A DNA stretch of 64,000 nt from Malacoraja senta (lineage: Eukaryota): the NCBI GenBank assembly GCA_038087875.1, contig CM075988.1, positions 13,144,001-13,208,000 on the forward strand, in the 5' to 3' direction. Every line of letters begins with the position of its first letter. The stretch's first letter is position 1. Below, piece after piece: positions 5,780 to 46,787 of this stretch. The position numbers and the translations under genes are program-made. The notes under the pieces were generated by a model that searched no databases, was not told where the DNA came from, and saw only the letters and a list, made by a program, of their open reading frames with translations.

Positions 5780-6127
5780 CATAAACCTGTATTTGTGTTC
5801 CTTGGCCCTTTTCATAAATTGGAGGGAAGACATTTGGTACTTTCACCGCACAAGTGTAGTTGTAAACAGTGTGACCAAACGATACATTTTCAATCTTCAG
5901 TGAGACCGTACAGTGTTTGAAACCATCCCAGAGGGGGTGAGGAATGCAGAGCAAGTTGGTCATTTTGTAATTAACATCAGGCTCTCCTGGTGATGTCCGA
6001 TACCAGTAAACGCGGAGCCAGGCATTCACTGTTCCATTATAAATAAATGTACAGTTTAACGTGACGGACGCGCCTCTCCGCACACTGACCAGACGTGGCT
6101 GGGCCAACTCTGTGATGAGCGGAACTC
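5780..6127 (-). CDS. Ig receptor gene B, VJ-type V-set Ig exon (paralogue of 46440-46787)
   Basis: Acceptor ttttccatcag, donor G|gtaaag, 348 nt, open. GVPLITELAQPRLVSV...TLNC...YWYR...YTCAVKVPNVFPPIYEKGQGTQIQVY. 39 nt differences from the gene A V exon by hand alignment (~89% nt, ~74% aa identity). Confidence 0.88.
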
Positions 6128-6902
6128 CTGATGGAAAATAAATTAATTTGTTATTTTTACTTCTATTAATATTCCAACATATACTCGCTTTAAACTACGC
6201 TGAAATGGGGAACAAAAACAGAATGCTGGAAGGTCTCTGTGGGTCAAGCAGCATCTCTGGAGGCAAAAGGTATAATATGATGTTTCAAGTGAGACCTTGC
6301 AATAGGACTGAGGGGGGGAACAAAAGATAGCAAGTATATAACAGGATGGAGGAAGATGGGATAGGGCTAGTCAGAGATAGGTGGTACAATGGGCAAAGGG
6401 GTGGATGATGAGGAGATCAAACCAGATAGGGGAGGAGGTCTGAATTGAAGATTGGATTTCCATTGTATCAATTATTTTTCTTAAATAATATTTGCCTTTT
6501 TCAGATTTAATTGTAAATATAAATGTTATGTTGGTTTGTGATGCAATGTTCTGCCTGAATTTGTTTCATTTGCAGACACCATCAGTTGTATCCGAATGTT
6601 GCCATTATGATACTTGGCTGATAATAACTTCAAGTTGTGAAGTGACTGCTAAAATCATAAGCAATAGCAGATTAAGGCCAGTCAGCCCATCACTGCCATT
6701 CAATCATGGCTGATCTATCTCTCCCCTTCAACCCCTTTCTCGTGCCTTCTCCTTATAACGCCTGACACACATTTTAATCAAGAATCTGTCAATCTCCTCC
6801 TTAAAAATATCTACTTTTATTGTATCTTTTAATAAATGCCATAATTATTTTTGAAAAAATGTACATTGCAACTTAAAATATCTAATCATTGTACTATCTT
6901 GT

Positions 6903-6958
6903 AGCAGGAGTTGAATCCTTCTCTGGTTCTGAATGTCCCTGATGCTAATTAAACTCTC
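6903..6958 (-). pseudogene. Damaged leader-exon homologue of gene B (ATG>ATT, 3' half and donor not found)
   Basis: The minus strand reads gagagtttaa...cagggacattcagaaccagagaaggATTcaactcctg, versus gene A gagagtttaa...cagggacggtcagaaccaggcaaagATGcaactcctc. Homology stops after about 4 codons. Confidence 0.65.
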
Positions 6959-7075
6959 AGCCTATCCCCTGCTCCAAGAGAACTTTGCATGACTTTGCTG
7001 AAAAACATCACCTATTCCTTCTCTCCAGAGATGCTGCCTGTCCCACTGAGTTACTCCAGCATTTTGTGTCCATCT

Positions 7076-8647
7076 TGTGGCGCCACCCCGGTGGTCAGGC
7101 CACTTACGATGCGAACCCTTGGCAGTCGAGGGTAGGGTCACGTGACTGGGTAATGGCGGGAAGGAGTTGTCACGAGGTTATGGGGTGTGCCCTAGTATAA
7201 GTATTCAGCCCCGGGTCAGCCTTCCCCCATTCGCGTGTGTGTTGTTCTCTTTACTTCACCAATAATGATCTCTTTGATTCACTCACTTAATCGCCCGCCA
7301 TATTGGTGACCCCGACGATCCAAAACGGTCATTTTTGCAGCCAACGATGAACCTCAACAGCCCGAGGTTGCTGACAATCCAGAACACTGTCTCCCTGAAG
7401 TTGCCCGAGTTCTGGACATCGCAGCCCCAGGTGTGGTTCCAACAGGCCGAGGCCCAGTTCCACGTTTGACGCATCACGGCTGATGACACCCGGTACTACT
7501 ATGAGGTTGGTGCATTGGATCAGGAGATGGCCGGTCGCCTGGTCCCTTACCTACGCTCGCCGCCGGATCAGGACAAATACGAGGGCCTTAAAGCGCTGCT
7601 CTTGCGGATCTTTGGGCTCAGACACCGGGACCACGCAGCGCGGCTCCTGCACATGGGCAGCCTCAGCGATCGCAAACTGTCGGAGATGATGAGCGAGATG
7701 CTCACCCTAATGACGGTCATCGGCCCTGCCTACACTTTGACGACGCCTTCCTGGAACAGATGCCGGACGACATCCGCCTGTTGCTCGCCGGTGAGGATTT
7801 CGCAGACCCCCTACAGCTAGCGGAGTGTGCGAACGAGCTGTGGCAAGACAAGCAGCAGGGCGGTGGCTCGATAGATCAAGTATAGGCGGTGCCTTGGCGG
7901 TCCCAGAAACCAGGCCCTGCGTCCACCGGGAGTTCGGCCGCGCTGCCCGTCCAGAAAGACCCCGGTAAGGGGAAGCGCTGGGGCCCGCAGCCCGTCAGTG
8001 CCGCCCACCCTGCTCGTATCCAGGAAATGCCAGGACTGGCCGCCAGTAGTCGCTGCAGTAGTCGGCCTGAAACATCGCCTCTACATGTGGGATCAACACT
8101 CGGGATGATGGTTCCTGGTTGATACGGGCGCGGAGCTTAGCGTTTTACCCGACGGGGGTGGACACTCGTTCTGGCAAGCAGGGGCCTTCTCTGACTGCAG
8201 TCAATGGCAGCTCTATACGGACGTATGGAGTTTGCACAATCCCGCTCATCTTTGGCCTCTGCTATTTCACCTGGACCTTTACGGTGGCCGACGTTTCCCA
8301 GCCATTGCTGAGCACAGATTTCCTCCGGGCGCAATCCCTGTTGGTGGATGTGCCTCGTTCGTCTATCCTTTCGGTTTTGTGCCTCCGGTTCTGGGGGGGG
8401 GGGGGTGGTCCTGTGGCGCCACCCGGTGGTTAGGCCACTTACTATGTGAACACTCTGCAGTCGGGGGCAGAGTCACATGACTGGGTAATGGCGGGAAGGA
8501 GTTGTCACGAGGTTTAGGGGTGTGCCCTAGTATATGTATTCAGCCCCGGGTCAGCCTTCCCCCATTCGCGTGTGTGGTGTTCTCTTTACTTCAGCAATAA
8601 AGATCTATTTGATTTACCATGCATGGCTTGCTTATTCGCCCGCCATA
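7076..8647 (+). mobile_element. Internally deleted Gypsy LTR retrotransposon (LTR-PBS-gag-protease-PPT-LTR)
   Basis: LTRs 7076-7302 and 8412-8647 (TG...CCATA), ATCT TSD on both sides, PBS TGGTGACCCCGAC, gag SLKLPEFWTSQPQVWFQQAEAQF, protease WFLVDTGAELSVLP, G-tract PPT. No RT or IN. Nested in a Penelope hairpin that has an ACTTTGCATGA TSD (6982-6992, 8691-8701). Confidence 0.92.
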
Positions 8648-8914
8648 ATCTTCGGTTTGAACCAGCATCTGCAGTTCCTGCCTATAACGGACTTTGCATG
8701 ATTATGGGTGATTTTATTACATGATCCACTTTGATTATCAGTTCAATCACTAATAATTTATGGTACATTTATTTTTTGTTATTGCATTTAATGTACCTGT
8801 TGAGCACAGCAAGTAAAAATGTCATTGTTCCATTCATAAATTGTTGCAAATAAATGCTCTTGAGAATAACTGGGTCAGCTTCCATCACTTTTGAGTAATA
8901 TGCATTTGGTAATA

Positions 8915-9050
8915 TGTTGCTGTTCTCTACACAGCTCCAGTGACCTGGGTTCAATCCCAGCCTCTGAGTCTGGAATTTGCATGTTCTCCCTATGACCTAA
9001 TGGGTTCCATCTGGGCACTTTAGTCTCCTCCCATGCCTTAAAAAAATATG
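8915..9050 (+). mobile_element. tRNA-derived SINE fragment
   Basis: B-box-like gggttcaatcc followed by the conserved gtttgcatgttctcc-type SINE core. Confidence 0.55.
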
Positions 9051-10709
9051 AAGGTTGGTAGAAGGAATTCAAAAAAATTTAAGTTCTTGAAAATCAGAAA
9101 TAAAAAGTCATTGAAAAACTTAGCAGGTCAGGCAGCATCAGTGAAAAGAAAGTCAATGTTTCATTGGAATCTTTTTGCAATTTTGATAAAAGAGTTGCCG
9201 ACCCAAAACATTGACCATTTCACTTTCCATGGATCCAGCCTGACTCACTGGGCTTCTTTTTGTTTTTTATATTCGTGCAGATTACTTGGTTAAATGGTCA
9301 CAGGATATAGATCTGTGGTAGATGATTCCACCACTAATCCACACCTTGCCCCCACCCCAGGGTGTAGATGAATGGTAGAATATAGAATGGGGACTGGGTA
9401 GTTGATGTGGCAAATAAAGTGGTTTACAGGAGGATCATTTTAGGAATGGGAGCCTTATTATTGGGGTGGATGCGTTGAAATGAAGGGTTTGTATCCATGT
9501 TGTTTCACTCAACAGTACAAGAAGTAAAACTCACCTCTGATTCAGATACATTTTCTGAAATCTACTTCTTCAGGGAAAGCCACTTTCTTCTTCCTTGTGG
9601 AAGACGGCACACAGCTCCGTGGAGAACTGAACAATCAGAAATGAACCTGTAGTCATTTGTATTGGGTAGAAGGCAAGCTAGATAGACTTTAGGTGTGTCG
9701 GAAAGAACTGCAGATGCTGGTTTAAATCGAAGGTGGACACAAAATGCTGGAGTAACTCAGCGAGACAGATCTTTGGAGAGAAAGAATGTGTGACTGTTTT
9801 GGGTCGAGCCCCTTCTTCAGATACCACTTAGACATTTCCTGTGCTGGTTTTTGAGGCAGTCAGTTATTGGTGAATGGTTTTTGCAAGTTCTCAATATCGC
9901 AGTGAAATTGTTTAAAATTTATAATGTTTTGTTTAAAAATGCATTCCATAGAAATGCATCATAATAGCTCACTAATTTAATTATTAATATACTAATTAAT
10001 ATACTAATTTTCCACTTAATCTGTAAAATCTGTAAACCACTCACAATTTTTGAACAGCTCATGTTTTAGCTTTCTCTGCTCAAAGCAGAATAATCTTAAT
10101 GTTTTTAATTAAATTTGAATCTTTAATTAATTCTGAGGTTCAACCAAGTAAATAAAATCCCACTTCCAAATTTTCCATTAAAATACAGACATTTTGCATT
10201 GTAAACACCCTCAGTCATGCAGCCACAGCCAATGAACTTACAAAATGGCAACCTTCCTTCTCCAGCTGTTCTGACATGATGCCTCAGCCAAGATAGAGGC
10301 AAGCTGCTCAGATCCCTGCTCCGGAGATCTAAGCTGCTTCTAGCCATTAGCTTCTGAAAATCTCCCCACAGACTGACCAACTAATCACACCACTAACACT
10401 TTGGCTTTTGTTAAATTTTTGTGATCATTTCAATCTATGAGCTGATTCCATAATACACAAGCTGAAAGAAGGATATTAACCAAGACACTGACCTGTTGAG
10501 TATCTCTGCTCCAGTAGGAACACCATCAGTTGCAATAAAGTGTTTCCTGCCAACATTCCCTTAATTTGGTACATTTCTTTCAAACTTCACAATATCCAAC
10601 TGTCACAGAATTCTCTTGTGCATTATATTCTCTCGTGATCAGTTCAGTTTCATCGCGGTCACAGTGGTTGAAGAGACACATCTGACCACGTACAATTAGA
10701 GAGGATGTA

Positions 10710-16264: not shown

Positions 16265-16788
16265 CTCACATGCTATTGTGGTGGCTGTTTATGTTTAATT
16301 TTTATGTGGTTATATGTATCTTGTTGCTTTTTTGTATGACTGTTGGCAAATCAAAATCCTTGTATGCTTACTTACTTGGCTAATAAATTAATTGCAATTA
16401 CAATTACAATTATTTTAATTACAGAAATAGTGTTTAACCACCAGGAAAGTAGGTCAACATTATGGCATCGAGGGACCAAAACTTTTATCATATAGGTGAC
16501 CTGGATACAGACAGGAAGTAAGAAGAGACTTGAAGTACCGTCAATGAGGAAGAGCTATGCAAAACCTACTTTCCGATTTAAGTGCAAACTGCACCTTCTA
16601 TTGTAAATTTAATCTGCTACTTGCTTGGCCAAGTCCTGTCTTTATATATCCTCCGCAGTAAGACTGTAAAAAGTATAATTCTATTTCAGGACTCTCCGAT
16701 GTGCTGCATACTTTTGAAGTGGAGTCGTATTGTGATGCTTAAATTGTGGAAATCCAAGTTGAATGGAGTGGCGTCCCACAGTGAGTAA

Positions 16789-19499: not shown

Positions 19500-20740
19500 A
19501 ATATTAATGGAGAGAGGATTGTTCCCCTTTTAATATAGGAGCGATACTTCTCTCACCAACAAAATTGAATAATACAATATATAGTAAAAATCCAATTATT
19601 CATAGTACAATTAGAATTTGGAAACAAATAAAATTAACTTTAAAATTAAGAAACCTATCGCTTCTCTCACCTATAGTTAATAATCCGTCGTTTAAACCAT
19701 CTATTATAGATAAATCATTTACATACTGGGACAGAATAGGAATTAAAACGTTTGGAGACATGTATGATAATGGAAATTTTTTATCATTTCACCAACTGCA
19801 ACTTAAATACAATTTGAGAAGTAATCAATATTTTAAATATTTTCAAATCCACGACTATTTGAAAAAATATACACAGGAATATCAAAATTTATCTCCAGAC
19901 CTATCAGACGATGCTATGAATATAAAGGCGGAATCAACTAACTTAATATCATATTTGTATAATATCATCTTAAATATAGAAATACCATCATCTGATAGAA
20001 TTAGAAGAGACTGGGAACAAGAACTAGCTATAAAAATCTCGAAAGAGAGTTGGGATAAACACTTGCTATATGTGCACAAATGCTCGATTAATGTAAGACA
20101 CATTCTAATGCAATTTAAAACTTTACATTGCATTAAGCTGTGATAAATGTCTAACCCAAGAAGCAACTATAGCACATTCTTTTGTTTTTTGTATAAAAAT
20201 TCAAAAATTTTGGAATGAAATCTTTGAAATGTATACGAAATTATTTAAACTAAAACTGAAACCGAATGCTGAACTGATTATTTTCGGAACAATGGAAGAC
20301 AGCTTTGAGCTGACTTCGTTTCAAAAGAGCTTCCTTAATTACGGCTTAATAATGGCAAAAAAACTTATACTGAAATTCTGGAAAATCGCTCCCACACCAA
20401 CGATAAAAATGCGGATTTCTAATATGTCCGAACTGTTACACCTGGAAGATATGAGATTCTTCTTAGCAGGCAGACCATTTCCAAAAGATTTGGTCTCCAT
20501 TTATCGACATTACAAACATAGGGTGCAACAAAACGTTGAAAATAAATGTGGTTCAGGTCCCTACGGGTTTCTCTGGACCACTCTTTCACTCACTCACTAT
20601 CTTTGCTAACTCTATCTTTTTTCTCTTTAAAGTTTAAATTAAGAAGTGGTACAAGAAATGTACAATTTTATTTTTGCTTGATATCACTGCAATGTACAAT
20701 ACTTCTAATAAAAAATAAGGAACAAATATATATATATATT
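19500..20740 (+). mobile_element. 5'-truncated L1 (ORF2 3' end) inserted in the DIRS
   Basis: NPIIHSTIRIWKQIK...HKCSINVRH, homologous to 38570-39530, with an A-rich tail. Confidence 0.9.
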
Positions 20741-30079: not shown

Positions 30080-31140
30080 GAAAACATAGAAACATAAAAA
30101 ATAGGTGCAGGAGGAGGCCATTTGGCCCTTCGAGCCTGCACCGCCGTTCATTATGATCATGGCTGATCATCCACAATCAGTAACTCGTGCTTGCCTTCTC
30201 CCCATATACCTTGATTCCGCTAGCCCTTAGAGCTCTATCTAACTCTCTTTTAAATTCATCCAGTGAATTGGCCTCTACTGCCTTCTGTGGCAGACAATTC
30301 CACAAATTCATAAGGGGAGTTGAGTATAGGAGCAAAGAGGTCCTTCTGCAGCTAATCAGGGCCCCAGTGAGACCACACCTGAAGTATTGTGTGCAGTTTT
30401 GGTCTCCAAATTTGAGGAAGGACATTCTTGCTGTTGAGGGAGTGCAGCGTAGGTTTACAAGGTTACGGATGGCGGGACTGTCATATGCCGAGAGAATGGA
30501 GTGGCTGGGCTTGTATACTCTGGAATTTAGAAAGATGAGAGGGGATCTTATTGAAACATATAAGATTATTAAGGGTTTTGACATGCTAGAGGCCGGAAAC
30601 ATGTTCCCGATGTTGGGGGAGTCCAGAACCAGGGGCCACAGTTTAAGAATAAGGGGTAAGCCATTTAGAACAGAGAAGAGAAAACACTTTTTCACACAGA
30701 GAGTTGCGAGTCTGTGGAATTCTCTGTCTCAGAGGGCGGTGGAGGCCGGTTCGCTGGATATTTTCAAGAGAGAGCTAGATAGGGCTCTAAAAGACATTGT
30801 GGAGTATATGGGATGAAGGCAATTAACACTGATTGTGGATGATCAGCCATGATCACATTGAATGGTGGTGCTGGCTCAAAGGGCCCACTCCTGCACCTAT
30901 TGTCTATTGTCTAAATTCACAACTCTCTGGATAAAAACGTTTTTTCTCATCACAGTTTTAAATGTCCTCCCCTTTATTCTTAGACAGTGGCCCCTGGTTC
31001 TGGACTCCCCCAACATTGGAAACATTTTTCCTGTATCTAGCTTGTCCAGTCCTTTTATAATTTTATGTTTCTATAAGATCCCTTCTCATCCTTCTAAATT
31101 CCAGTGAATACAAGCCCAGTCTTTCCAATCTTTCCTCATA
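30080..31140. mobile_element. Nested CR1 fragments (+ copy at ~30311-30912 inside a - copy)
   Basis: Plus-strand HLKYCVQFWSP...RTRGHSLRIRGKPF splits a minus-strand CR1 3' end. AAATTCA is duplicated at both junctions. Confidence 0.85.
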
Positions 31141-31229: not shown

Positions 31230-32108
31230 AGGGCCTGGCCACTTGGGTGATTTGTCAGTGGACTGCCGGCGACTTTCAAGTTCGCGACACTCGCTGAAAA
31301 AACGGGAACTGGAACGGCGAGTGNNNNNNNNNNNNNNNNNNNNNNNNNNNNNNNNNNNNNNNNNNNNNNNNNNNNNNNNNNNNNNNNNNNNNNNNNNNNN
31401 NNNNNNNNNNNNNNNNNNNNNNNNNNNNNNNNNNNNNNNNNNNNNNNNNNNNNNNNNNNNNNNNNNNNNNNNNNNNNNNNNNNNNNNNNNNNNNNNNNNN
31501 NNNNNNNNNNNNNNNNNNNNNNNNNNNNNNNNNNNNNNNNNNNNNNNNNNNNNNNNNNNNNNNNNNNNNNNNNNCACGGTGCAAAGCCAAGGTGATACAG
31601 CCAGGAAGGTTAAGACGGCTAGCACAGTGGGGGGAAGGAGTGGAGACACTTTAAAGAAGCCAGACAATTTTGAATAAGCCAGAGATACACAGTTGTGAAG
31701 TTTGGCGAGCATTTAACATTACCGGTTGGTTCTCCTTGGTTCTGAAAACTCATGCTTACGTTTTTTTATCCCCCAATGAGCCAATGAAAATGCCCGGTCA
31801 GCAAAGGCGATTAACTAAAACTACCTACGACTAGCTTGACTACCTATAACTACATGGCGACCCCAATACAACTGCACCTACGACTACAAAAGTATCGATT
31901 TTCTCCATGGCGACTAATTTTTGGTCGCAGAAATGTTTTCAACATGTTGAAAAATTTGTGGCGACCATACTGAGGCCGCGACTAGTTCCCAGAATGCGGG
32001 AACTCCTCATGACCATGAAGGAGACTCACCAGAGACCACCAGCAAACATGTGGCGAGCGCAGAGTCCCCTGCACTCGCGTAAAAGGTCGCCTAAGTGGGA
32101 CAGGCCCT
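31230..32108. mobile_element. PIF/Harbinger-type MITE spanning an N gap
   Basis: AGGGCCTGGCCACTT...AAGTGGGACAGGCCCT with TTA on both flanks. Confidence 0.75.
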
Positions 32109-32593: not shown

Positions 32594-35500
32594 TCTTCCG
32601 GTGGCGCCATGGAGCAGTGAGAGGCACAGCATTAAGCTCCACTCCCGATAAATCGCTGAAAAAGAAGTTTTGGAAGACGGGACCGATTTAAAAATACCGG
32701 AGCTGCTTGACATCGTGTAAGTGACGTCATCAGAAATCGCCGCGAAATAACGGAGAATACCGGCAGTTTTAAATGAGAAAGAGGAATCTGCCCCAGAGAC
32801 CTACAAGACCTGCTACAAGAAGCTTTCTGAAAGAACTTTTATCACTTTTATCTCCCATAGTTAATAACCCTTTGTTTAATCCCTCTACTATAGATAAATC
32901 TTTCACACATTGAGATAGACTAGGAATTAAAACGTTCGGTGACTTATATGAAACTGGAAAATTACTTTCATTTCAACAATTACAAATAAAATATAAACTC
33001 GGAAATAATCAATATTTTAAATATTTTCAAATATGCGACTATTTGAAAAAATATATAAAAGATCATTATAATAGCCCAGCAGATGTATTGGATGATGCAA
33101 TGCAGATAAAAGCTGAATCAGCAAACTTAATATCATATTTGTATAATATTATCTTAATTGTAGAAATACCATCTACGGAGGGTATCAGAAGAGACTGGGA
33201 ACAAGAGTTAGCTATTAAAATTTCAAAGGAAAGGCGGAATGAATAAAAGTGCATAAATGTTCGATTAATGTAAGACACACTTTAATACAATTTAAAATTT
33301 TACATAGATTATATTATTCCAAAACTAAAATCCATAAAATGTTCCCAAATGTATCATCCATTTGTGATAAATGTCAATCCCAAGAAGCTACTATAGCGCA
33401 CTCATTTGTTTTCTGTACAAAAATTCAAAAATGTTGGATTGAAATTTTCGAAATCTTTACAAAATTATTTAAAATAAAACTGATACCCAAAGCAGAATGG
33501 ATTATCTTCGGAATAACGGAAGATGGTCCAGAATTAAATGTGTTTCAAAAGAAACTAATAGACGTCGGGTTAATAACCGGAAAAAAGCTAATCCTAAAAT
33601 TTTGGAAGAAGGCTCCAATACCAACTATAAACATGTGGATTTCAAATATGTTCGAAACATTACACCTAGAAGAGATAGGACTCCTCCTGGCAGGTAAACC
33701 AGATCACTTCCACCTGACGTGGTCTGTATTTATAGAATTATTACAAAAATAGGGTGCAAAGGTACTTAAAAAAAAAAAACTGAGGTCAGGTAAGGGGGGA
33801 TGAAAGTTGGAGAGTTGGTATGTCCTATTTGCGTAATGCTCATAAAAACTATTTGTTTCTCTCTTTTCCCTCTTTCTCTTTCTCCTTCTTTTCTAGGGTC
33901 TATTTCTTAACTCTTTTTCTTTTGTTTTTAATTTTGTTCTTATAGGATCTTCGTTCTTTCTTGTTGTCACATTTTCTACACTTTCACGTTTTCCTTCACT
34001 TTCTTCTTTCTCTCAATCTCATCCTTTCTCTTTTCCAGTGTAAAAAACAAACGGAGTACATTAATTGTAAGAAGATATAAGTGACGAGTACTAATGTATG
34101 TGGTTGTAATGTAATGTACTTCTAATAAATTAAAAATAAAAAAATAAAAAAATAAAAGAAATCGCCGAGAAATAACGGAGAATACCGGCAGTTTTAAATG
34201 AGAAAGAGGAATCTGCCCCAGAGACCTACAAGACCTGCTACAAGAAGCTTTCTGAAAGAACTGGGGAAAACTTTACATACAGCAGCAGAAGAAAGCTCAG
34301 AAGAGGAATCTGAATCTCAAAGATCAGCCACGGAAATGGCTTCTAAGGAGAAACAGGTGGAGCAAATGGAACAATCGGTAAGAACCTCAGTAATGAGTGA
34401 CCTTGCTAAAATGATACAAGATGGGAATACTGAATTGGAGAAAAACCTGTCTAAACAAATTAAGTATGGTAACACGGAGGTCATTCAGGAAATCGCTACT
34501 CTAAGGAAACGTGTTGAAGAAATTGAGGATGATTTAAGTACAGAAATCAAATGGGTGGAGAAAGATTCCAACGAAAAGTTTGATGCTGTCCTCAAAACTA
34601 CTAAAGCATACAACACGGTTATGGAAGATATGGAAGCTGCGATGAATGATATGTCTAAAGAGATCAAGAGACTGGGGAAGGAGCTGGAATGTGTTTCGGG
34701 GCAACTAGCCAAAACGTCTGACAAATGCTTGGATTTGGAAGCAAGATCGAGAAGACAGAATTTAAGAATAGTTGGAGTCACAGAGGGAAGGGAATCTGGA
34801 AAGAACCCTCGGGAGTTTGCTGCAAACTTACTTAAACATGTATTTAAGCTGTCTGACAATCCGAGAATAGATGTGGCTCATCGGGTTCGACGAGCTCAAC
34901 CAAAGCTAGGAACCCTACCAAGACAGATCATAGTGAAATTTCACGACATTTCAGCTCAGGAAGATATTATGAAACAAATCCCATTCGGAACGAATTTGAT
35001 ATTTGAAGAGGAACATTTGAGATTCTTCCGAGACTATCCTCCAGAAATCGCCAATAAAATAATAATAATAATAGATTTTATTTTAAGGGCGCCTAATACC
35101 GAGGTCTCTAGGACACCTTACAATTTAAGAAACATATAAACATATAATCAGAGTAAAACAAGTTATAAAGACATCACAAATACACAAATTAAAAACAGAA
35201 ATTCGATCCAAAAAAAGACAACAACAAAATTCAGAAAACACAACATGACAGAGATGACAGATTCTGAAAGGAATCCAATCTGTAAGATACGGAATAATGT
35301 ACCCTGCAAAAATGAGTGTTACTTATAAGAGTGTAGAACGTGCCTTTACTGACCCAGAAGAAGCATTTAAATATGCACAAGAAATTGTAAAGGAGACCGA
35401 CACCTAAGTAAACAACACGATTATCAGAGTTGGTACTTTATAATATCGGCAGAGGTGAAATGGTGAAGATATTACTTTTTAATCAAAGAAAATGCTTTAA

Positions 35501-38500
35501 TTAAGATGGCGGAATTTTCGATGAGGCGTTGGCTAGACATTTTATCTCTTTGAAATGCTAACCCAAGGTCGAACTTTATGCTTCACTTTGAACGAAGGGC
35601 TTAAATACAAAGCGGAGCCGTGGAACATGGAAAATTAACAAAAAGGGACTTGAAAGCAAAAATTTATGATTTAACATTGTTTTTGTTTTTTTATTTTACA
35701 ATTTAATACTAACATATAAGTAATCAAGTAATTGAATTAACTTAGCAATAGCAAGCTAATATGATTTAGTACAATGTAACAATGACTAACTCCTCCGGGG
35801 GGGGAGGGGGAGAACAGCCAAGAGTCTGATTCTGGTTAACCCTTTGCAACCTGCTGCTGTCTAATATAAGAGACTGGGACCTAACTGGGAAGTAAAATGT
35901 AATAATTGTTAGTATATATTGGCATGTGCTAGTAGATATTAGTATATATCTAATGCTAGATTATTTGAAGATGCAGTTAGATATACAGACTCGAAGGTTT
36001 TTTAAAATATATATATATATCTCGCGGTTTTGAACTGGCCTTTCTTCCTTTTTACAATATTTGATCAAGGGAGCGGAGCTTAATGTAAATTAACATCTAC
36101 GGAAGTCCTTAAGAATTTAGCTACCACCAATAGGTGGTTATTTTTTTATGGTATCCTTTTTAGATACTATAATAGCACTTTTTTTATATTTCTATATCAC
36201 GTCACACTTTTTTGTCTTTTTTAAGGTTTATTTTGAAAGGGATATGCCAACAAAATCTAATAATTGCAGATGCCCACCCAACACCAGGAGGATTGAGGTA
36301 CTGTGTTGCACCATATGACTTAAAGGTATCAAATTGATTCACAATGCAAGACGATAAACAAAAGAAAATTGGAGGAATCACATTTTGTAGCTGGAATATA
36401 AGGGGCGCTAATGAGCCAATTAAAAGGGGTAAGATTTTCGCCCAACTAAAATCACTCAACTCTGACATGATTTTTTTACAGGAAACACACTTGAAACGAC
36501 AAGCTCAGACTAGACTGAAGGCAAATTGGATCGGGTAAACATATTACTCTTCATTTATTTCTAAATCTAGAGGCACAGCAATTATTATTTGTAAAGGTAT
36601 ACCATTTAAATCAAAGAATATTATAACAGATAAAGAGGGGAGATATGTTATAGTCACGATAGAGATTTATTCTACCCCCTTACTATGATAAACATTTATG
36701 CTCCCAATTTTGACAATCCCCAATTCTTTAATAAAATTCTGGATATAATTTCAGAGTTTAATTATCAAAATGTGATAATTGGGGGAGACTTCAATTGCGT
36801 TTTAGATCCATATCTGGACAAATCTGCGAAACAAAAGAGGATCAACATAAAATCTAAAACTAGTGAACTCCTAAATACATATATAAAAAACACAAATATA
36901 ACAGACGTATGGAGGATTGCTAATCCAGTTGGAAGGGAATACTCTTTTTATTCAACGGTACATAAAACTTATTCGCGTATCGACTATTTTCTAGTGGATA
37001 CGAAATTAATTCCGTACACAATTAATCCTAAATATCATAATAGCATCATTTCTGATCACTCCCCGCTAACTTTTTTCTTAAAAGTAGAAGGAATGTCTAA
37101 TAAAAAATCGTTTTGGAGGTTTAACCCCCAAATTTTAAACAACCCACAAGGTTGTACATATTTAAAACAACAGATGGAATTTTTTTTTGAGACTAACGAT
37201 ACTCCAGGTATCTCACACTCTTTATTATGGGAAGCTTTTAAGGCATTTATCAGAGGAGTTATAATTTCATATCAAGTTTTTCAAAATAAAAAGAATAATA
37301 CTGAACAAATGCAGCTGGAAGAACAAATTAAACAATTAGATACAGATAACGCTAAAGACCCAACCATTTAACTAGACAAAAATAAAAATTAAAAGACAGA
37401 CAGGCTGTAGGGGCCTCTGCAGTAATCCTGCGCCGCCCACTATCCTGCGAAGACCCTAGCGAGAAGATTGGGTAAATACGTTAGTAAATTAATAAATCCG
37501 GATCAAACGGGGTTTATACCGAAGAGATACTCATGCACCAATTTGAGACGTTTGTTTAATATAATGCACTCACATAAAATTGAAGAAGAAGACTTATCAA
37601 TTATTTCATTGGACGCAGAAAAAGCATTTGACCAAGTGGAATGGCAATACCTTTTTTTGCAAAAATTTCAAATGGGAGAGAATTTTATCTCATGGGTAAA
37701 ATTATTATATGACAAGCCGACTGCTAGAATACTGACCAATAACATACTATCTTTGAAATTTCAACTATCCAGGGGCAATAGGCAGGGATGCGCATTATCG
37801 CCCCTGCTATTTGCTCTTGTGATAGAGCCCCTAGCAGAATGTATAAGAATACATCCGAATATCCATGGTTATAATACCAAACATTCAAACAATAAAATGT
37901 CATTATATGCAGATGATGCATTATTATACATCACAAAATCGCAAATCAGCATACCAAATATATTAAATTTAATAGAGGAATTTGGTTCCTTTTCAGGATA
38001 TAGAATAAATTGGAATAAAAGCGAAATTATGACGATAAAACCTCAAGAGCCGACATACCTTTTAAAATTCCCTTTTAGAATTGCAACAGAAAAATTTAAA
38101 TATTTGGGTATCCAAATTACCAGAAAATATAATTCTTTATTTAATGCAAACTATATGCCTTTACTAACTAAATTAAATGCGTCGATTAAATTTTGGAAAA
38201 CACTTCTGATGTCTTTAATAGGCAGAATAAATGCTATAAAAATGATTTTCCTACCACATATTTTGTATTTATTTCAATCAATACCAATATACTTACCTAA
38301 AAAAATCTTTAAAAAACTTGACTCTGATATTACACGTTTCATATGGGACTATAAATCACATAGAATTCAAAGAAAACACCTGTGTAAACCTAAAGAATTC
38401 GGCAGACTGACACTCCCCAATTTCTTGTACTACTATTGGGCAGTGAATATTAAAAATGTAATTCATTGGCTGGACAACTCTGCTCAACAAGTAGACTGGA

Positions 38501-39863
38501 TAATAATTGAGACAGAGGATTGTTATCCTTTTAACATAGGAGCGATCCTTTTCTCCCCGATAAAACTGAACAATACAATATATAAGAAGAATCCAATAGT
38601 TCATAGTACAATACGAATTTGGAAACAAATAAAATTAACTCTCAAATTAAGAAATCTATCGCTCCTCTCTCCAATAGTTAATAATCCGTCATTTAAACCA
38701 TCTATTATTGATAAAACGTTTACCCATTGGGAAAGAATAGGAATCAAAACGCTTGGAGACATGTACGAAATGGGAAACCTTTTATCATTTCAACAACTAC
38801 AATTAAAATACAACCTGAAAAGTAATCAATATTTCAAATACCTTCAAATCCGAGATTACCTGAAAAAACACACAAGAATATCAAACCTTAACCTCAGATC
38901 TATTAGATGAAGGAATGAACAGAAATGCGGAAACAAGTAATTTAATATCATATTTGTATAACATCATTTTAAACACAGAAATACCATCGACAGAAGCAAT
39001 TAGAAGGGATTGAGAACAAGAATTAGCTATAAAAATTCCGAAAATCAAATGGGAAAAATACTTGCTATATGTACATAAATGCTCGATTAATGTAAGACAC
39101 AACTTAATTCAATTTAAAATTTTACATAGATTATATTACTCAAAAACCAAACTGAATACAATTTTCCAAATGTTTCTCCCATCTGTGATAAATGCCTATC
39201 TCAAAACGCTACTATATACACTCTTTTGTCTCTTGCATAAAACTTCAAAAATTCTGGAATGACATTTTTGGAATTTTTACAAAACTATTTAAAATAAAAT
39301 TGAAGCCCAATGCAGAACTGATTCTCTTCGGATCAATGGAAGACGGATGTAAGCTGACTTCATTTCAAAAATGTTTACTTAATTATGGCTTAATAACAGA
39401 AAAAAAATTAGACTTAAATTCTGGAAAAATGCACCCACACTGACGCTCAAAATGTGGATCTCAAACATGTCGGAAATGTTACACCTTGAAGATATGAGAT
39501 TCCTCCTATCAGGCAAATAAGACCAATTCTTAAAGATTTGGTCTCCATTTATCGACTTATTACAAGCATGTGGTGCAACACAACCTTAGAAATTAATTGT
39601 GTCATAACCGGCTGAAGGGTGGGTAAATATACGAAGGAGGCATATCCCTTTCATTTTCTCTCTTTTCTTTCTTTTTTTTTCTTTTCTCTTTCTCTCTCCT
39701 CTATTCTCTCTCTTTCTGCTTATTTCACATCACCTTCTTTTTTTTCTTTTTCGAGCTATATTATATTCTCTATCTTTATATTTCTTGCTTTTCTTACTCT
39801 TTTTTTTCTACTATTAATATAAAATTTGTTTAAAAAATAAAAAATTAAAAAAATTAAAATTAA
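32594..39863 (+). mobile_element. Full-length L1-clade LINE (ORF1 34198-~35400; ORF2 ~36344-39530, disrupted)
   Basis: 13-bp TSD AGAATTATTTCCA (32581, 39864). ORF1 LDLEARSRRQNLRIVG; APE WNIRG/LQETH; RT DAEKAFD, RQGCALSP, YADD. Frameshifts, a deletion near 37371-37468, and an inverted L2-like tail inserted in ORF1 at ~35055-35275. Confidence 0.95.
32838..34156 (+). mobile_element. 5'-truncated L1 inserted into the 5' end of the full-length L1
   Basis: ORF2 3' end, 3' UTR and A-rich tail, flanked by 106-bp direct repeats (32732-32837, 34157-34262). Confidence 0.88.
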
Positions 39864-40139
39864 AGAATTATTTCCAATGATAGCTCTTACACGGAGAGCA
39901 ATGTCTTCTTCTGCTTGTGCGTATGTCCAGTTGATTTTGATACCAATTTTCTGAGGCATTAAAATAAAGACAAATGAGGAATTTATTTATTCATGCCTTG
40001 AACAACCTTCTCAAATCCAACATTCTTAAGAAACATTTTGCCATTACAAATAGTCCCAGGCCTATATAAGGAGGTTTTTGGCTATTTGTTTCTCAAATAA
40101 AACTCAATACCGGTGAGTTTACTAAATTGGCATAATTTC

Positions 40140-41235
40140 TAGAGTCGTGGTGTCATACAGCATGGAAACAGGCCGTTCACCTCAACTGGCCCATGCCGAC
40201 CAAGATGCCCCATCTATACTGGTCCCCCCTACCCATGTTTGGCCCATATCTCTCTAAACTTTTTCAACCATTTACCTGTCCAAATGTCTTTCAAATACTG
40301 TTGTCGTACCTGCTTCAACTACCTCCTCTGGCAGCTTCTTCCAGAAACCCACTACCCTGTGTGTGAATAAGTTGCCTCAGGTTCCTATTAAATCTTTTCT
40401 CCATCACCTTATACATATGTTCTCTGGTTCTTGATTCCCCTACTGTGGGTAAAAGTCCTTGTCCATTCACCCTATCTATTCCTCTCATGATTGTATATAC
40501 CTCAATCAGATCATCCATCATCCTCATACGCTCCAAGGAATAAATTTCCAGCCTCTCCCTCTAGCTGAATACCTCAAGTCCCGGAAACATTCTCGTAAAT
40601 CTTCTCTGAACTCCTTCCAGTTTTATATTTGACCAGCAGATGGTGCAAGAACTACACTAGGATTCAGTACATAAATCAAAGTGCAGATTACTGCAGCAAC
40701 TGTAGCAATTTTGTTTCTGAAAGCAAGAAAACTACAAATATGGTGCCAAGTAAAAGTGATTATCCGACACACTTGGGAATTTGAAAGTTGGTTTATTGTC
40801 AAATTTTCCAGAATATTGAATGTTATTCCTATTCACGCCCTACACATTTTCAATTCATATGAAAAAATATTATATTATATTGCTGTGCTATATTTTCTAT
40901 GTTATATAATATAAAAAAACAAATTCAACACTGGAGCTATTGTATAAATAGACAATAGACAATGTGTTCAAGGGTAGGCCATTCGGCCCTTTGAGCCAGC
41001 ACTGCCATTCATTGTGATCATGGCTGATCATCCCCAATCAGTACCCCGTTCCTGCCTTCTCCCCATATCCCCTGACTCCGCTATGTTTAGGAGCCCTATC
41101 TAGCTCTCTCTTGAAAGTATCCAGAGAACCGGCCTCCACCGCCCTCTGAGGCAGAGAATTCCACAGACTCACACCTCTCTGTGTGAAAAAGTGTTTCCTC
41201 GTCTCTGTTCTAAATGGCTTACCCCTCATTCTTAA
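40140..41235 (-). mobile_element. Two CR1 3' fragments (40140-40620, 40945-41235)
   Basis: GESRTREH...FNRNLR and KPFRTETRKHFFTQRGVSLWNSLP on the minus strand. Confidence 0.85.
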
Positions 41236-42489
41236 ATTATTTCTTAAATTCTTAAATAGTATTTACTTTGGCTACCTCAAGAAAGTAATTGGTTCTTGCT
41301 TGATACCCTTATTTTTCCAAAGTAGAATTGTTCTTCCTTGCTGACTATCTAGCTTCTCCACATAAATGCCTTTCTTCATCTGCAAAGCAGTTAGAGAAGA
41401 CATCCAAATAATGGGCCAATTTATCACATGAGCCATCGTATTCAAGTACATTGATTTCTCACAACTGATCACCAATGGGAAAGGCCTATATATTTCACCA
41501 AATAGGGTGTAAAAGGTAGTCACCGTCATGGAGAGATACAGCGTGAAAACAGACACTTTGACCCACCAAATCTGTGCCAACTTATATTATATTTTATCAT
41601 TATACCATGTTATATTACATTTAATGCACCAAACCAAATGTATTTTAAGCATGTAACTGTGATGTTAAATGTATGCACAAGGTGGCGCACTGGTAGAAAA
41701 GATAGGAACAGCATCTACAGTGCCAATAGGTATAACTATGATATGGCCTTGTACGGATCCAGAGCAGTTCCACATATGCAATATAAGAGGTTAGTTCACA
41801 ATCTGACCCCAGAATATAATACAGAAGGGTAGAGTGAAAATCAAGTAAACACTTTAATGCCTCTGTTTATCACCTTCACTATGATCTTCCTACGAATCTA
41901 AAATTCAGTTCGACCCTTTCTTGCATCTCTCCCTTTTTCTGTATCTCTCTGTCTCTGTCTCAGAAGGCTAACAATCTAGTGACATTTAATATAGTCCAAC
42001 TGACTCCCACAATGATCTTTACAGGACTTCCTCCCACATGGTCTCTTGTAAACATAGAAAATAGCAGGACGAGGCCATTTGGCCCTTCGAGCCAGCACCA
42101 CAGTGCTGTAAGTCCACCTTTCTTTCCCTTTCTCTCAGTGTCACTTTTTCTGTTGCACCTATTCTCAAGAAGAGACTTTCTTTTCCAGAACTTAGGCTCT
42201 GGTGAAGTTATTTTCATCATAGGTTTAAGGTAATAGGGGAAAGGCTTAATAGGAACCTGATAGGGTGGAGGGTGCATGGAATGAGCTGCCAGAGGAGGTA
42301 ATTGAGGCAGGTACTATTGCCTGCAGCATTTAAGAAACATTTAGACAGGTACATGGATAGGACAGGTTTAGTGGGATATGAACCAAACGCAGACAGGAGG
42401 GTCTAGTGTAGCTGGGACATATTGGCCAGTATGGGCAAGTTGGGCCAATGGGCCTGTTTCCACGCTGTGACCCTATGACTCTATAACAT

Positions 42490-43160
42490 CTCAAATGTCC
42501 TCCAGGGAATGTGATTTCTCCTCTGCTGTGGTCGATGGACCTCCCGTTCACATTTCCTCCATTTAATAAAGATACTATTCCCTTTCACCTTTCACCTTAC
42601 CACCAGCTGCGATGGGATCCTACCAGCAGTCACATCTTCCCCATCTCATCTCTTCCTGCTTTCCACAGGGACCATTCCCTCTGCCACTCACTAATTCACT
42701 TATCCATTCCCACCCACCTCTCCCTGTCCCCTGGCACTTTCCACTGCAACCGTAAGAGATGCTGCACTTGTTCCTACATCTCTGCCCTCACTACCATCCA
42801 GTGACCTAAACAATACTTCCAGGTCAGATGTAGATTCACAATCTCCTACAACTTTGTCTACTCAATTTGTATTCCTGATGTGACCTCCTCTACATCGGCA
42901 AGACCATAAGTAGGTCAAGCAGCTGCCTTGTGGAAGTGCCCTGTCCCTAATGGCTATTCTGACTTCCCAGTTGCCAGACCTTTCATCTCCCCTTCCTACT
43001 CACACTGACCAGTCTGTCCTAGGCCTTCTCATGACCATGGTGAGGCCTAATCCAGATTGGAAGAACAACACTTCAGATGTCATCTGGGTAATCTACAATT
43101 TAGTATGAACAATGAAAATGGATTCATACATGTGTTCATATCTCCAATTTCAGGTAATCC
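42490..43160 (+). mobile_element. Penelope-like element, GIY-YIG endonuclease fragment
   Basis: RWDPTSSHIFP...AFHRDHSL...GTFHCNRKRCCTC, then decayed LLYIGKT and LEEQH segments. Confidence 0.8.
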
Positions 43161-43254
43161 TGTGCTCCCTTTTCTCTCATTTTTGCCATTGTGTAAAAAA
43201 AGTTGCCCCTCATATTCCTATTAATTCGCCCTTCACTTTAAATCTACGTGCTAT

Positions 43255-45200
43255 AGGGAGGTTTCACGGCAGTCGGGTCACGACCCCATGACCCGTACTG
43301 TTGCTACGCTACGCCACGCCAAGTGGAGTACACGCGATGAACTGCAGGCAGGCACTTACCATTGTTTCCAGCGTTGCGGGCCCGTTAAAACCCGCCGAAA
43401 TGGTCCATTTTTGCGCTGTAAATAATTATGGAAATCGGGATAAGCGTGGGAGACATTTAGCCAACTTCAGAATTCAAAAAGTGAGGAGAAATGACGGTAG
43501 ATAGAAGCGAGAGCTGAAGGGACAACAACAGCTTGTCGAACATTGGCCGTTTGCTCACTGCATTTCATCAACTAAGGCATTATTTGTGTTTTTTCTTGAT
43601 TCCTTTGGCATCTAAAAAGTTTCAGAAGGGATAATCGCCCCTGGTTCTCGTGGGTTTTTACATACAAAAATAAAACGCCTCTGAAGCAAAATTTACAACC
43701 AGATGTACCACTTCTGAGACTTTTTAGATACCAAAGAAATAAAAGCAAAAACAAATAATGCCTTACCGTTAATGAAATGCAGCGAAAAAACGCGTTAAAT
43801 CCCTATATTTTAAATTCCGATATCTGCACAGCCAATATTCGCCAAGCACTTTAGCTGCTGTTGTCCCTTCAGCTCTCGCTTCTCTTTACCTTCATTTCGC
43901 TTCACTTTTCGAATTCTGAAGTTGGGTACATGTCTCTCACACTTACTAGGTATGTTACAAAACTTACCTTCAGTCGCGCTGTAATTCTGCCACTGGCCGT
44001 GTGCGCGATTTTGGCGCCTTTAAGGGGGGGGCGGGGTTAAAACGCGGGTTTCTCCCTTGTCCTGGAAATATTTTGTTGGAGTACAAAACTTCGCTGACAA
44101 AATCGTTCCTACCGGCGATTTGTGAATTTTAAAAAAAAATTAAATCGTCAATGTCAGCGCTAGAGTCATTTTAAAAGCAGCTCCTGAAGCGTCAACGCCG
44201 ATAACGGGGACGGATTTCACACAATGGACAGGTAAACAAAAGTGCTTTCTTTAAATGTATAAAAGTGCTTCTTAAGAAGCCTTTAATTCACATTTTGTCA
44301 TGCGACACGGTGATTTTATTCCCCGAATTAACGGCAGTATTTTTCATGCCAATACGGGGTTAAATTCACCGCAAATGAACGTTCCAAAAGATCGCGTTCC
44401 AGTAATTCTCACTCGCAAGATGAATTAAATCCCCATTAATTTACAGGTATTAAACATTCAATTCCTTCCATTTGGCCTGTAAATTCATGAAAATTAGATT
44501 TAAAAATTATGTTATATTGTGAATTATTGTGTGAATGTTATTTGGACACTTAGGCTATTTAAAAATGTTAATCTATTCTTAAGAAATTGATAGATGTTTA
44601 GATCTAGTAATTGAATTTTGTAATTAGCTACAATTAGGTAACTAACTAATTATATGCTTTACTTTCATGTCTTCGAAGTAAGATTGTTTCATATTTGTTT
44701 CAGAATGCTTCAATCTATAATACCTGAAAATTTCTTTCAGTTACCATAATTTTTAAGAAAGTTATGGGCTTTTAACTGTCCTCGATCACAGCTTTTGTGT
44801 TAAGTCAATGGAAAAGCAATAGGGAACTAGATGCTAATTTCTGAGTATGATAATGGCCATAACTTTTTTAATACTGAAGATATGAAAGTGAATTAAGTGT
44901 CAAATTAAACTTCTTTTTATGCTTTATCTGATGGGATAAATTGCAGACTTTATTTTTTAAATCTCAAAATTTTGTAACATTGCTACACTTACCCCGTCTT
45001 CCACAATTTTTTACAGCGAAAAAAGTCAACATTTTGGCGGTTTTTAACAGGTAGGAATGTACGCGTTTCTTGTATTAATAACATATACTGGAAGTGACGG
45101 ATGTCCTCCAGATGGATTGAGCGGCTCCGAGCGTCAAGCCCTATGACCCGGTGACCCAGCGTCAAGCCCTATGACCCGGTGACCTTACGTGCAACCCCCT
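43255..45200. mobile_element. ISL2EU-like (PIF/Harbinger-related) non-autonomous transposon with two inverted THAP exon remnants
   Basis: Termini AGGGAGGTTTCACG / CGTGCAACCCCCT, AT dinucleotide flanks, subterminal atgacccg repeats. THAP remnants at ~43405-43600 (+) and ~43745-43945 (-). Confidence 0.7.
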
Positions 45201-45248
45201 ATAGGTTCAACAAGGGCGGGAAAAAACATTTTCCAGTGGTGCCCACTG

Positions 45249-45490
45249 CAGGAAGTGAGAGTTAAACTTTATCGAAATGCTTCAATGGGTGAAAGAAACT
45301 CATTTGAAGTAAGACAACCTTGCTGCAGCGAATTAGAAAAGGCACTGAAGTCACTCTGACGGCGTATTGACTGGGGCAGTTGTTTTAGATGCTGTGACAT
45401 TGTTTTTGATTCAGTTCTCTTCAACAAAGGCAGAGATATTAATCTAGGGAAAGTGAAAACTTCCTTCGGCTCGAACGTAACTTCCTCCGC
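45249..45490 (+). promoter_or_regulatory. Putative haematopoietic promoter motifs of gene A (ETS, IRF/ISRE-like, PU.1-like)
   Basis: CAGGAAGTG at 45249, GGAAAGTGAAA at 45448, and GAGGAAGTT on the minus strand at 45479-45487, 160-400 bp upstream of the leader ATG. Motif match only. Confidence 0.4.
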
Positions 45491-45645
45491 TCAGTACACC
45501 CTCTGGCATTTCACAGTCTGTGCTATTCTCCGTCTGAGATGCGAGTTCACAGCGGACGGATCATCCTCACTTGACATTTGCACGATTGGAGCTGGCCGCG
45601 GACGGAGAGTTTAACACTTCCAGGGACGGTCAGAACCAGGCAAAG

Positions 45646-45694
45646 ATGCAACTCCTCCTGAAGCTGCTTTTCCTCCTGCATGCAGGAACACAAG
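45646..45694 (+). CDS. Ig receptor gene A exon 1, signal peptide (MQLLLKLLFLLHAGTQ|G)
   Basis: ATG at 45646 opens 16 hydrophobic codons plus 1 nt, ending AAG|GCAAGT (GC donor, phase 1). It joins in frame to the phase-1 V exon at 46440, giving AGTQG-VPLIT. A homologous sequence lies upstream of the gene B V exon. Confidence 0.75.
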
Positions 45695-46439
45695 GCAAGT
45701 TATGTTGATCGGACAATCTGTGGACCAAAGAGCCGTGATGGGGATCATCATTATGTGGCATGTTGCATCGATAGGTAGTTCAGGAGCGAGTCCGTTATTA
45801 AAACAGCAAGTCGATGAATATTTCTGCTCAAAGGCCGAGAAACCCTTCAAAAGATTTAGTCTCCATTTAATCTATATTTTTAATGTTGGAATACAAGTTT
45901 TGCGTCTTCATTGCCTGCGATTGCCTGCAATGATTCAATTAGTTAAAACATTTGAGATATAATTCGGTCACTACAACTCCATCAGAGAGCACAAAGCAAG
46001 AATCTTACGAAGGTGTAGAAACGAGGAACAGCAGATTCTGGTTTGCAAGAGAAGACACAGAGGGCTGGAGCAACTCAGCGGGTCAGGCAGCATCCTTGGA
46101 GAACAGGAATAGGTGGCCTTTCGGGTCGGGACCCTTTTGCAGACTTTGAAAAGTCATCTCATCCATGTGCTCCAGAGATGCTTCCTGACCCGCCGAGTTA
46201 CTCCAGCCCTTTGTGTCTTTTCTAGCGTCCAAAGATCACGGTGCCACCAGCCACCGAATCTGATGAGAGAAGGCATTTGCAACCATCATGGAAGCGAGAA
46301 TCGTTTGAAAACGTCAGATTTGAATACGTTTCTTTTAAATATTGTTTCCGTTAGAAAACCCCTTGTTCGGTGTGTAAAGTGGATGTTTATTGAATTACTA
46401 ACGGGAGTATAATTGACAAATGTGTTTATTTTCCACCAG

Positions 46440-46787
46440 GAGTTCCGCTAATCACAAATTTGACCCAGCCACGTCTGGTCAAGGTGTGGAGAGGCGAGTC
46501 CGTCACGTTAAACTGTACATTTACTTATAATAGAAGTGTGAATGCCTGGTTCCGCATTTCATGGCTTCGGACATCACCTGGAGAGCCTGGTGTTACTTAC
46601 AACACGAACAACTCGCTCTGCATTCCTCACCCCCTCTGGGATGGTTTCAAAATCTGTACGGTATCACTGAAGATTGAAAATGTATCGGTTGTTCACTCTG
46701 ATTACAACTACATTTGTGCGGTGAATGTACCAAGTGTCTTCCCTCCAATTCATAAAATGGGCCAAGGAACACGAATACAGGTTTATG
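46440..46787 (+). CDS. Ig receptor gene A exon 2, VJ-type V-set Ig domain
   Basis: Acceptor ttttccaccag, donor G|gtaaag, 348 nt, phase 1-1, open. Motifs: TLNC (B strand), SWLR (C strand), SLKIENV (E), YNYICAV (F), GQGTRIQV (J-like G). Extra Cys pair (LCIP, ICTV). Confidence 0.92.

Follow-up and report, generated by a model that had tools for sequence, protein, structure and literature searches.

We analysed a stretch of 64,000 nucleotides (nt) from the skate Malacoraja senta (contig CM075988.1; the whole stretch is called the window here), which contains two V-set immunoglobulin (Ig) exons. Exon A occupies 5780-6127 (minus strand) and exon B 46440-46787 (plus strand). They come from a family of cell-surface Ig receptors of elasmobranchs, and each codes for the germline-joined V(J) domain at the N-terminus. 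Exon B belongs to a near-complete gene of this family that has no tail, and A is an orphan V exon, the sole intact piece of an old, inverted and decayed partial duplicate. An earlier note on this DNA had reported a strong excess of amino-acid-changing differences between the two exons and had proposed diversifying selection on a ligand-binding face. The excess comes almost wholly from the B branch, and the pattern is what the fast evolution of immune-receptor clusters usually produces, rather than that of two working genes driven apart.

All positions are window coordinates unless a comparison locus is named. These loci were L001 of Leucoraja erinacea and L002 and L003 of Rhinoraja longicauda, and all of them begin about 18 kb to the right of the position of A. 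The codon set was made up of six V exons from the three species: A, B, Le1 and Le2 of Leucoraja, and Rh1 and Rh2 of Rhinoraja. A region search with residues 18-132 of the public Leucoraja model P0036 returned zero additional skate sequences, and the codon set remained at six exons. Replacement (N) and synonymous (S) changes were counted according to Nei and Gojobori (NG86), and the pairwise maximum likelihood (ML) estimates of omega (dN/dS) come from a purpose-written GY94-F3x4 program.

The receptor family and the two copies

The exon coordinates given in the earlier note proved exact: both exons are 348 nt long, have phase 1/1, and are bounded by an AG acceptor and a GTAAAG donor. Both match the Pfam V-set with E-values in the order of 1e-9. 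The V domain has a Cys25-Trp41-Cys92 core, an extra Cys60/Cys72 pair, a VFPP FG loop (N/S-V-F-P-P-I in the exons A and B) and a J-like GQGT at 107-110, and C25, W41, C92 and GQGT are all encoded within the single exon. The Cys, Trp and J motif are conserved across the V alignment. The AlphaFold (AF2) model of the V domain reached a pLDDT of 88. The nearest solved or predicted structures are the V domains of antibody lambda chains, VpreB and T-cell receptors (TCR), together with the germline VJ domains of IGSF6, NFAM1, CD8 beta, CTLA-4 and NKp30.

A HMMER search in 1.84 billion representative proteins found only six close relatives, all of them from elasmobranchs, which are 243-494 amino acids (aa) long and have the V domain directly after the signal peptide. 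According to Pfam, the domain order in these relatives is V-set, C1-set (which also scores as a CD80-like C2-set), Ig_3/I-set and a transmembrane (TM) segment. The long-tailed relatives keep the motifs TIYAVV, VSYADI and SEYSVV, of the immunoreceptor tyrosine-based switch or inhibitory type (ITSM/ITIM). Overall, the genes of the family encode a leader, the V(J), a C1 and a C2-like Ig domain and the TM segment, to which the long-tailed members add an ITSM/ITIM tail, and these genes form a small tandem cluster.

Regarding the names, the relatives were automatically called "Siglec-12/13" or -14-like, "sialoadhesin-like" and "MAG-like" by NCBI. A Siglec-type V domain has an essential Arg on strand F and an intrasheet B-E disulfide instead of the canonical B-F pair. 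In the skate exons the F strand reads Y-x-C-A-V, with Ala following the canonical Cys, and the family alignment has no conserved Arg at this place. Since Ala rather than Arg follows the F-strand Cys, sialic-acid binding would not be expected from the sequence. No Siglec V domain was present among the top sequence and fold matches of the V domain, and the Siglec-8 structure 7quh matches domains 2-3 only (P0034 residues 169-337, E=1.9e-13). A Siglec-type V-set, as the automatic name implies, is ruled out by the canonical B-F Cys pair, the missing Arg and the lack of Siglec V matches.

The exons of gene B (Table 1) were located by tblastn with the relatives and then by inspection, and no damage was seen in its leader, splice sites and three Ig exons. 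A GC donor (AAG/GCAAGT, 45692-45700) opens the intron that follows the leader and is kept in all six intact gene copies of the three skate species; we take this donor as real because five gene copies from two other skates share it. The TM exon has a premature stop in Leucoraja gene 1 too (L001 ~16475-16486), there a TAA that comes three codons later than the TGA of B. These stops at different codons in two species suggest that the sequence after the TM segment is dispensable in the tail-less gene. A tblastn search with the tails of the relatives found no tail exons of gene B in the window.

The window is colinear with L001 0.4-26.2 kb from 24.5 to 64 kb and stops about 4 kb short of the V exon of Le2. 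Due to this colinearity, B and Leucoraja gene 1 are positional orthologues. The second Leucoraja gene (gene 2), made up of V, C1, Ig and TM exons and three ITIM-tail exons, begins about 4 kb past the point that matches the end of the window. Thus, a tail-less gene and an ITIM gene stand in tandem in Leucoraja (L001), and an equivalent tandem pair is found in Rhinoraja longicauda (L002/L003). Judging by this synteny, an ITIM-bearing partner gene probably lies just past the right end of the window. The 490-aa public model P0036 of Leucoraja ('Siglec-13'; L001 10001-55765) is actually a chimera of the two tandem genes, because it takes V-C1-Ig from gene 1 and TM and tail from gene 2, and skips the TM exon of gene 1 and the Ig exons of gene 2. 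Therefore, the public models and names for this family are unreliable, with a "Siglec-12/13" label on a V domain that is not of Siglec type and a chimeric Leucoraja model.

Around exon A only remnants were found. The leader relic lies about 800 bp upstream of the exon, at the same distance as the leader in B, and it yields no readable signal peptide. No C1, Ig or TM exons were found downstream of A in the remaining 5.7 kb of the window on the minus strand. A pattern search for an intact alternative leader returned the leader of B only, although a very different leader might have escaped it. Exon A itself has kept an open reading frame (ORF). Nevertheless, 56% of simulated exons were still stop-free after 16 random substitutions, so the intact ORF of A is no evidence of function.

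Table 1. Position of the receptor exons, their remnants and the assembly gap between the two copies.
Feature	Position	Strand	Remarks
V(J) exon A, intact 348-nt phase-1 V-set, orphan in decayed inverted copy	5780..6127	-	ORF, AG/GT; Pfam V-set E=2e-9; no downstream C1/C2/TM exons
Relic of the leader region of copy A	6903..6941	-	39-bp match to the B leader region, 82%; start codon ATT; homology lost after ~13 nt
Pseudo-V fragment downstream of exon A	5135..5370	-	three reading frames, stops, internal (central) deletion, donor lost
Intron flank of A, homologous to B flank 46788-47177	5411..5779	-	25-27% diverged
Gene B leader exon (MQLLLKLLFLLHAGTQ plus 1 nt), then conserved GC donor	45646..45694	+	same exon in five gene copies of two other skates
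Gene B V(J) exon	46440..46787	+	ORF, splice sites; Pfam V-set; AF2 model pLDDT 88
Gene B C1-set exon	48286..48576	+	90% aa identity to Leucoraja; Pfam C1-set in relatives
Gene B third Ig exon (Ig_3/I-set, C2-like)	50473..50790	+	tblastn with relatives, Pfam in relatives
Gene B transmembrane exon, in-frame TGA at 51274-51276	51194..51292	+	TGA directly after the hydrophobic segment
Assembly gap (run of N), intergenic, between the two copies, in no exon	31324..31574		15 kb from one V exon, 25 kb from the other

Probable gene conversion and the replacement excess

A recount of the differences between A and B reproduced the earlier figures. The exons differ at 39 nt, and 30 of the 115 codons are amino-acid-changing, against 3 that are purely synonymous. 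The Nei-Gojobori values were Sd 4.5 and Nd 34.5 over 80.7 synonymous and 264.3 replacement sites (pS 0.056, pN 0.131), which gives a dS of 0.058, a dN of 0.143 and a dN/dS of 2.47. The excess of replacements had a one-sided Fisher p of 0.032, and pairwise ML gave an omega of 2.96 with a kappa of 1.8 (likelihood ratio test, LRT, against omega=1, p=0.023). The differences fall 12, 18 and 9 times at codon positions 1, 2 and 3, and 3 of 46 four-fold sites differ. The replacement excess is real but borderline, being only nominally significant, and it is typical of paired-receptor clusters.

The earlier note had also named a low dS explained by patchy gene conversion as a result that would refute its claim. 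The exon values have to be read together with the divergence K of the flanks, which was measured on aligned intron sequence. Between orthologues exon dS and flank K agree (0.039 and 0.06, respectively, for B versus Le2), and the flank K was 0.08-0.10 for B versus Rhinoraja and 0.002-0.005 for Rh1 versus Rh2. Downstream of A, the flank K to B, Le2 or Rhinoraja was 0.30-0.39 (about 400 bp, p-distance 0.25-0.31), and upstream of A only 68 bp could be aligned, which are 29% different. The exon dS of A versus the other exons was 0.06-0.14. In the A-B pair, the synonymous divergence of 0.056 is about one fifth of the 0.27 found in the flank (Fisher p=1.4e-5), and the comparison of the four-fold sites with the flank gave p=0.002. 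The level of divergence switches right at the edges of exon A, which means that the common ancestor of the exon is much younger than that of the sequence around it. This points to a gene conversion of A that would have been limited to the exon, the simplest cause for such a discordance between exon and flank. The low dS is tied to gene conversion, which counts against the interpretation given in the earlier note.

The exon tree was ((B,(Le1,Le2)),A,(Rh1,Rh2)), with lnL -934.8. A tree with A and B as sister sequences (lnL -950.5) was worse by 15.7 units and was rejected. Regarding the site patterns, 13 were unique to A, 10 split Rhinoraja from the rest, 8 split B and Leucoraja from A and Rhinoraja, and only 1-2 grouped A with B versus the rest. 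From this tree and these patterns, the conversion of A would date roughly to the split between the Rajidae line and Rhinoraja. A mosaic of patches within the exon was discarded due to the few conflicting patterns.

Other copies also resemble each other closely. The exon dS between Le1 and Le2 was 0.026, and the V exons Rh1 and Rh2 (L002 10889-11236 and L003 10920-11276), together with 450-bp flanks, were 99.5-99.8% identical, which indicates a very recent conversion or duplication. The second Rhinoraja copy has a 9-nt tandem insertion that duplicates PHP in the conserved IPHP motif.

The 39 differences between A and B were polarised by parsimony with the four other skate exons. The changes unique to A were 11 N and 2 S. 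Those unique to B were 9 N and 0 S, and B alone also has four replacements at sites with three states. The remaining differences separate B and Leucoraja from A and Rhinoraja. When the B-unique changes were counted by domain, there were 11 N and 0 S in V versus 10 N and 4 S in C1+C2.

With all six V exons the one-ratio omega was 1.78 (p=0.036 versus 1, uncorrected and with recombination present). Without A it was 1.89 (p=0.037 versus 1). The omega of the B branch went to the upper bound (p=0.002 versus 1, p=0.012 versus the one-ratio model), and that of the A branch was 1.46 (p=0.55 versus 1). Taken alone, C1 had an omega of 0.88 and C2 of 0.77, neither of them different from 1, and in the same genes the omega of V (1.89) differed from that of C1+C2 (0.85) with p=0.008. 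We also compared replacement divergence directly with the flanks, which does not involve dS. In B versus Le2 the pN was 0.110 and the flank divergence 0.056 (ratio 1.95, p=0.005), and in B versus Rhinoraja the ratio was 1.6 (p=0.03). The V exons of Le1 and Le2 repeat the pattern, with 15 N and 2 S. These results support a faster evolution of the V domain at replacement than at neutral sites in this family. Thus, from the original claim of diversifying selection the fast evolution of V stands, whereas two working paralogues diverging from each other are not supported, because copy A is decayed and its branch is neutral-like.

Regarding the position of the changes, they had been described as clustered. 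However, the 30 altered residues were no more clumped than random (scan windows of 10-30 residues, P 0.41-0.82), and the invariant run around IPHPLWDGFK, 12 residues long, is of unremarkable length (P=0.56). Among the six skate V exons 49 of the 115 residues are variable, and the C' strand is the most variable element, with changes at 7 of its 8 positions. In the GFCC'C'' sheet plus its loops 32 of 63 positions were variable versus 17 of 52 elsewhere (sheet-based Fisher p=0.06). Therefore, the excess claimed for the C-C'-C''/FG face is a trend only, and the FG loop proper is conserved.

Gaps, repeats and mobile elements

The assembly gap between the two copies sits in a 1.9-kb stretch that is missing from Leucoraja, and no coding sequence crosses it. 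Its two sides abut at a single point of L001 in the same order and orientation, 29209-30217 corresponding to L001 4677-5689 and 32155-32593 to L001 5686-6124. Nothing in the comparison of A and B depends on this gap. A second assembly gap is found downstream of gene B, at 58861-59060, and its flanking blocks are colinear with L001 21.1-21.4 kb.

A non-LTR (long terminal repeat) retrotransposon occupies 32600-39860 and is inserted relative to the orthologous Leucoraja interval. Its recognisable parts are a coiled-coil ORF1 (34198-35139), an endonuclease (36685-37371), a reverse transcriptase (37468-38910) and a zf-RVT piece (33249-33752), and related copies of the reverse transcriptase end lie at 19501-20550 and 32840-33759. 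At 3514-3954 of the plus strand there is a THAP-domain ORF (E=1e-9), probably derived from a transposon, with related copies at 43407-43679 and 43688-43940. Copies of this THAP element are thus near both V exons, in opposite arrangements. Finally, a repeat of about 350-600 bp is present at 4652-5012, 30310-30913 and 40944-41236, and also in the Leucoraja and Rhinoraja loci, both in introns and between genes, with up to 93% identity across species.

Explanations and known receptor clusters

In the explanation that we prefer, exon A, but not its flanks, would have been overwritten after the duplication by conversion from a functional member of the family. This would have happened at roughly the split of Rajidae and Rhinoraja, and A would have been drifting like neutral DNA since then. 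The excess between A and B would then be made up of neutral drift on A, a replacement-rich stem of B and Leucoraja, and a replacement-only burst on B. The burst would most likely come from recurrent positive selection on the putative ligand-binding domain, as in other paired-receptor clusters. Because of the contrast between V and C domains and of a pN above the intron rate, positive selection is the best single explanation of the burst, and we consider the explanation as a whole, with selection on V as the cause, to be probable, with ample room for doubt. What was observed are the counts, the gene structures, the synteny, the discordance of exon and flank and the contrasts among branches and domains; selection as the cause, the conversion with its date and any ligand are inferred.

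Several points weigh against this explanation. The analysis covers six closely related sequences of three species only, and these show concerted evolution, which violates the assumption of a single tree, so the LRTs can be inflated. The p-values against omega=1 are all between 0.002 and 0.04 and uncorrected, the synonymous counts are tiny (0-10 per comparison), and the A-B pair was selected post hoc in a scan for oddities. Neither the scan statistics nor the sheet-based Fisher test gave a significant enrichment of changes on the binding face. The omegas of C1 and C2 (0.77-0.88) are not different from 1, and the whole ectodomain may be weakly constrained. Furthermore, a stop comes straight after the TM segment in B and in its Leucoraja orthologue. 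B could itself be decaying, and with its truncated tail a relaxed constraint may be part of the cause.

These last points lead to the strongest alternative, in which there was no positive selection at all: A would be a pseudo-exon, B a truncated, weakly constrained or dying gene, omega would be near 1 throughout, and the shortage of silent changes would be sampling noise together with the post-hoc choice of the pair. The A branch, whose omega does not differ from 1, the high chance of keeping an intact ORF after 16 random substitutions, the stop after the TM segment of B and the C1 and C2 omegas all agree with it, and the p-values of the pair are only 0.02-0.03. However, the B branch rejects an omega of 1, V and C domains of the same genes differ in omega, and the leader, splice sites and three Ig exons of B are intact. 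The excess also recurs between Le1 and Le2, and the pN of B is about twice the flank divergence, whereas drift alone would stay at or below the neutral rate. We regard an origin without selection as a serious possibility, but as clearly the less likely one.

Two functional paralogous receptors, whose ligand-binding faces (C-C'-C'' and FG) would have been driven apart by diversifying selection, are improbable. A pair omega of 2.5-3.0, the variable C' strand and the conserved Cys, Trp and J motif would be expected from such receptors. Nevertheless, A is without a usable leader and without C, TM or tail exons, its branch is neutral-like, and it is not the sister of B in the exon tree. In addition, the clustering tests were not significant and the PxVFPP of the FG loop is conserved.

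It is equally improbable, in our opinion, that exon A serves as a V cassette without leader, inverted and intact in its ORF, a reservoir for gene conversion with the working genes of the cluster. The pseudo-V pools of chicken, or SIGLEC16P as a converter of SIGLEC11, offer an analogue for such a germline reservoir. If this were true, shuffling between expressed genes and silent cassettes would diversify the ligand-binding tip in this cluster, and the frameshifted pseudo-V beside A would be an older member of the pool.

Patchy gene conversion alone, in which converted tracts would have erased all differences and unconverted patches would have kept old ones, by chance rich in replacements, is very improbable: the exon dS is indeed far below the flank K and concerted evolution is obvious (Rh1/Rh2, Le1-Le2), but the differences are evenly spread with a longest identical tract of 37 nt, which is within chance, the silent divergence near 0.3 expected in unconverted patches is not seen, the site patterns fit one tree with few conflicts, and such a process cannot yield a pN above the flank divergence in B versus Le2.

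Returning to selection on V with conversion of A as the preferred explanation, the locus can be compared with known receptor systems. The CD33-related Siglecs (Siglec-5/14, Siglec-11/16) are likewise Ig receptors clustered in tandem, which have near-identical ectodomains and different tails. The long-tailed skate members share with them the ITIM/ITSM tails, and skate domains 2-3 match Siglec-8. A C2-like match and an ITIM tail are found in the relatives, gene B itself being without a tail. In contrast, the skate V domain is antibody/TCR/VpreB-like, with the B-F Cys pair and GQGT, and the skate domain 2 is a C1-set. In SIGLEC11/16, gene conversion is described as limited to the 5' part, which binds the ligand, and a non-functional copy, SIGLEC16P, takes part in it (PMC5701461). 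This gene pair would be the closest analogue of the conversion with a dead copy in the skate cluster.

SIRP alpha/beta/gamma, with their polymorphic and fast-evolving V domain, also resemble the skate genes. They have a germline VJ-type V followed by a C1-set, and long- and short-tailed members with similar ectodomains. However, the third skate domain is an Ig_3/I-set instead of a C1, no SIRP was among the top sequence or fold matches, and the short-tailed skate member lacks the charged TM residue for DAP12. For SIRP alpha, an extensive polymorphism has been described (PMC3974974).

CD28 and CTLA-4 have a V(J) domain as well, with a proline-rich FG loop (V-F/Y-P-P) before G-x-G-T, and CTLA-4 clusters appeared among the language-model neighbours and CTLA-4 at rank 12 of the fold matches. 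Nevertheless, the skate genes have three Ig domains and not one, the motif is not MYPPPY, and tail and gene structure differ. Membership in this family, which is marked by one V domain, a stalk cysteine and the ligand motif MYPPPY, was ruled out by the three Ig exons and by the FG loop.

UrIg and UrIg2, antigen-receptor-like genes that do not rearrange, are also from elasmobranchs and encode a VJ domain in a single exon, with a C1 domain after it. For UrIg2, gene conversion among domains and a V that is divergent between species have been reported (PMC12227049). The description given there has 3-11 C1-type domains and hinge exons and mentions no ITIM tail (PMC12227049), whereas the skate family has one C1 and one C2-like domain and then the TM segment. 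No UrIg2 chain was found among the top 60 PDB matches. On its architecture, which the published description of UrIg2 sets apart, the skate family was excluded from UrIg/UrIg2.

A fast V domain, receptors paired by long and short tails, and conversion that involves a dead copy make up the known pattern of the CD33-related Siglec, SIRP, KIR/LILR and CEACAM clusters. Leucoraja and Rhinoraja have linked genes whose ectodomains are similar and whose signalling ends differ, and gene conversion among members is indicated by the exon-flank discordance of A and by the near-identity of Rh1 and Rh2.

These exons are worth taking into account when dN/dS is used on gene families, because a value above 1 between paralogous exons can arise from one decayed copy plus one fast lineage, and the divergence of the flanking introns is needed for a correct reading of dS. 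The literature searches found no paper describing this skate receptor family. The locus thus brings a family with a ready-joined antibody-like V domain for which we found no description, and an example from cartilaginous fish of the rule that clustered Ig receptors, inhibitory and short-tailed, change fast at their ligand-binding tips, which gene conversion reshuffles.

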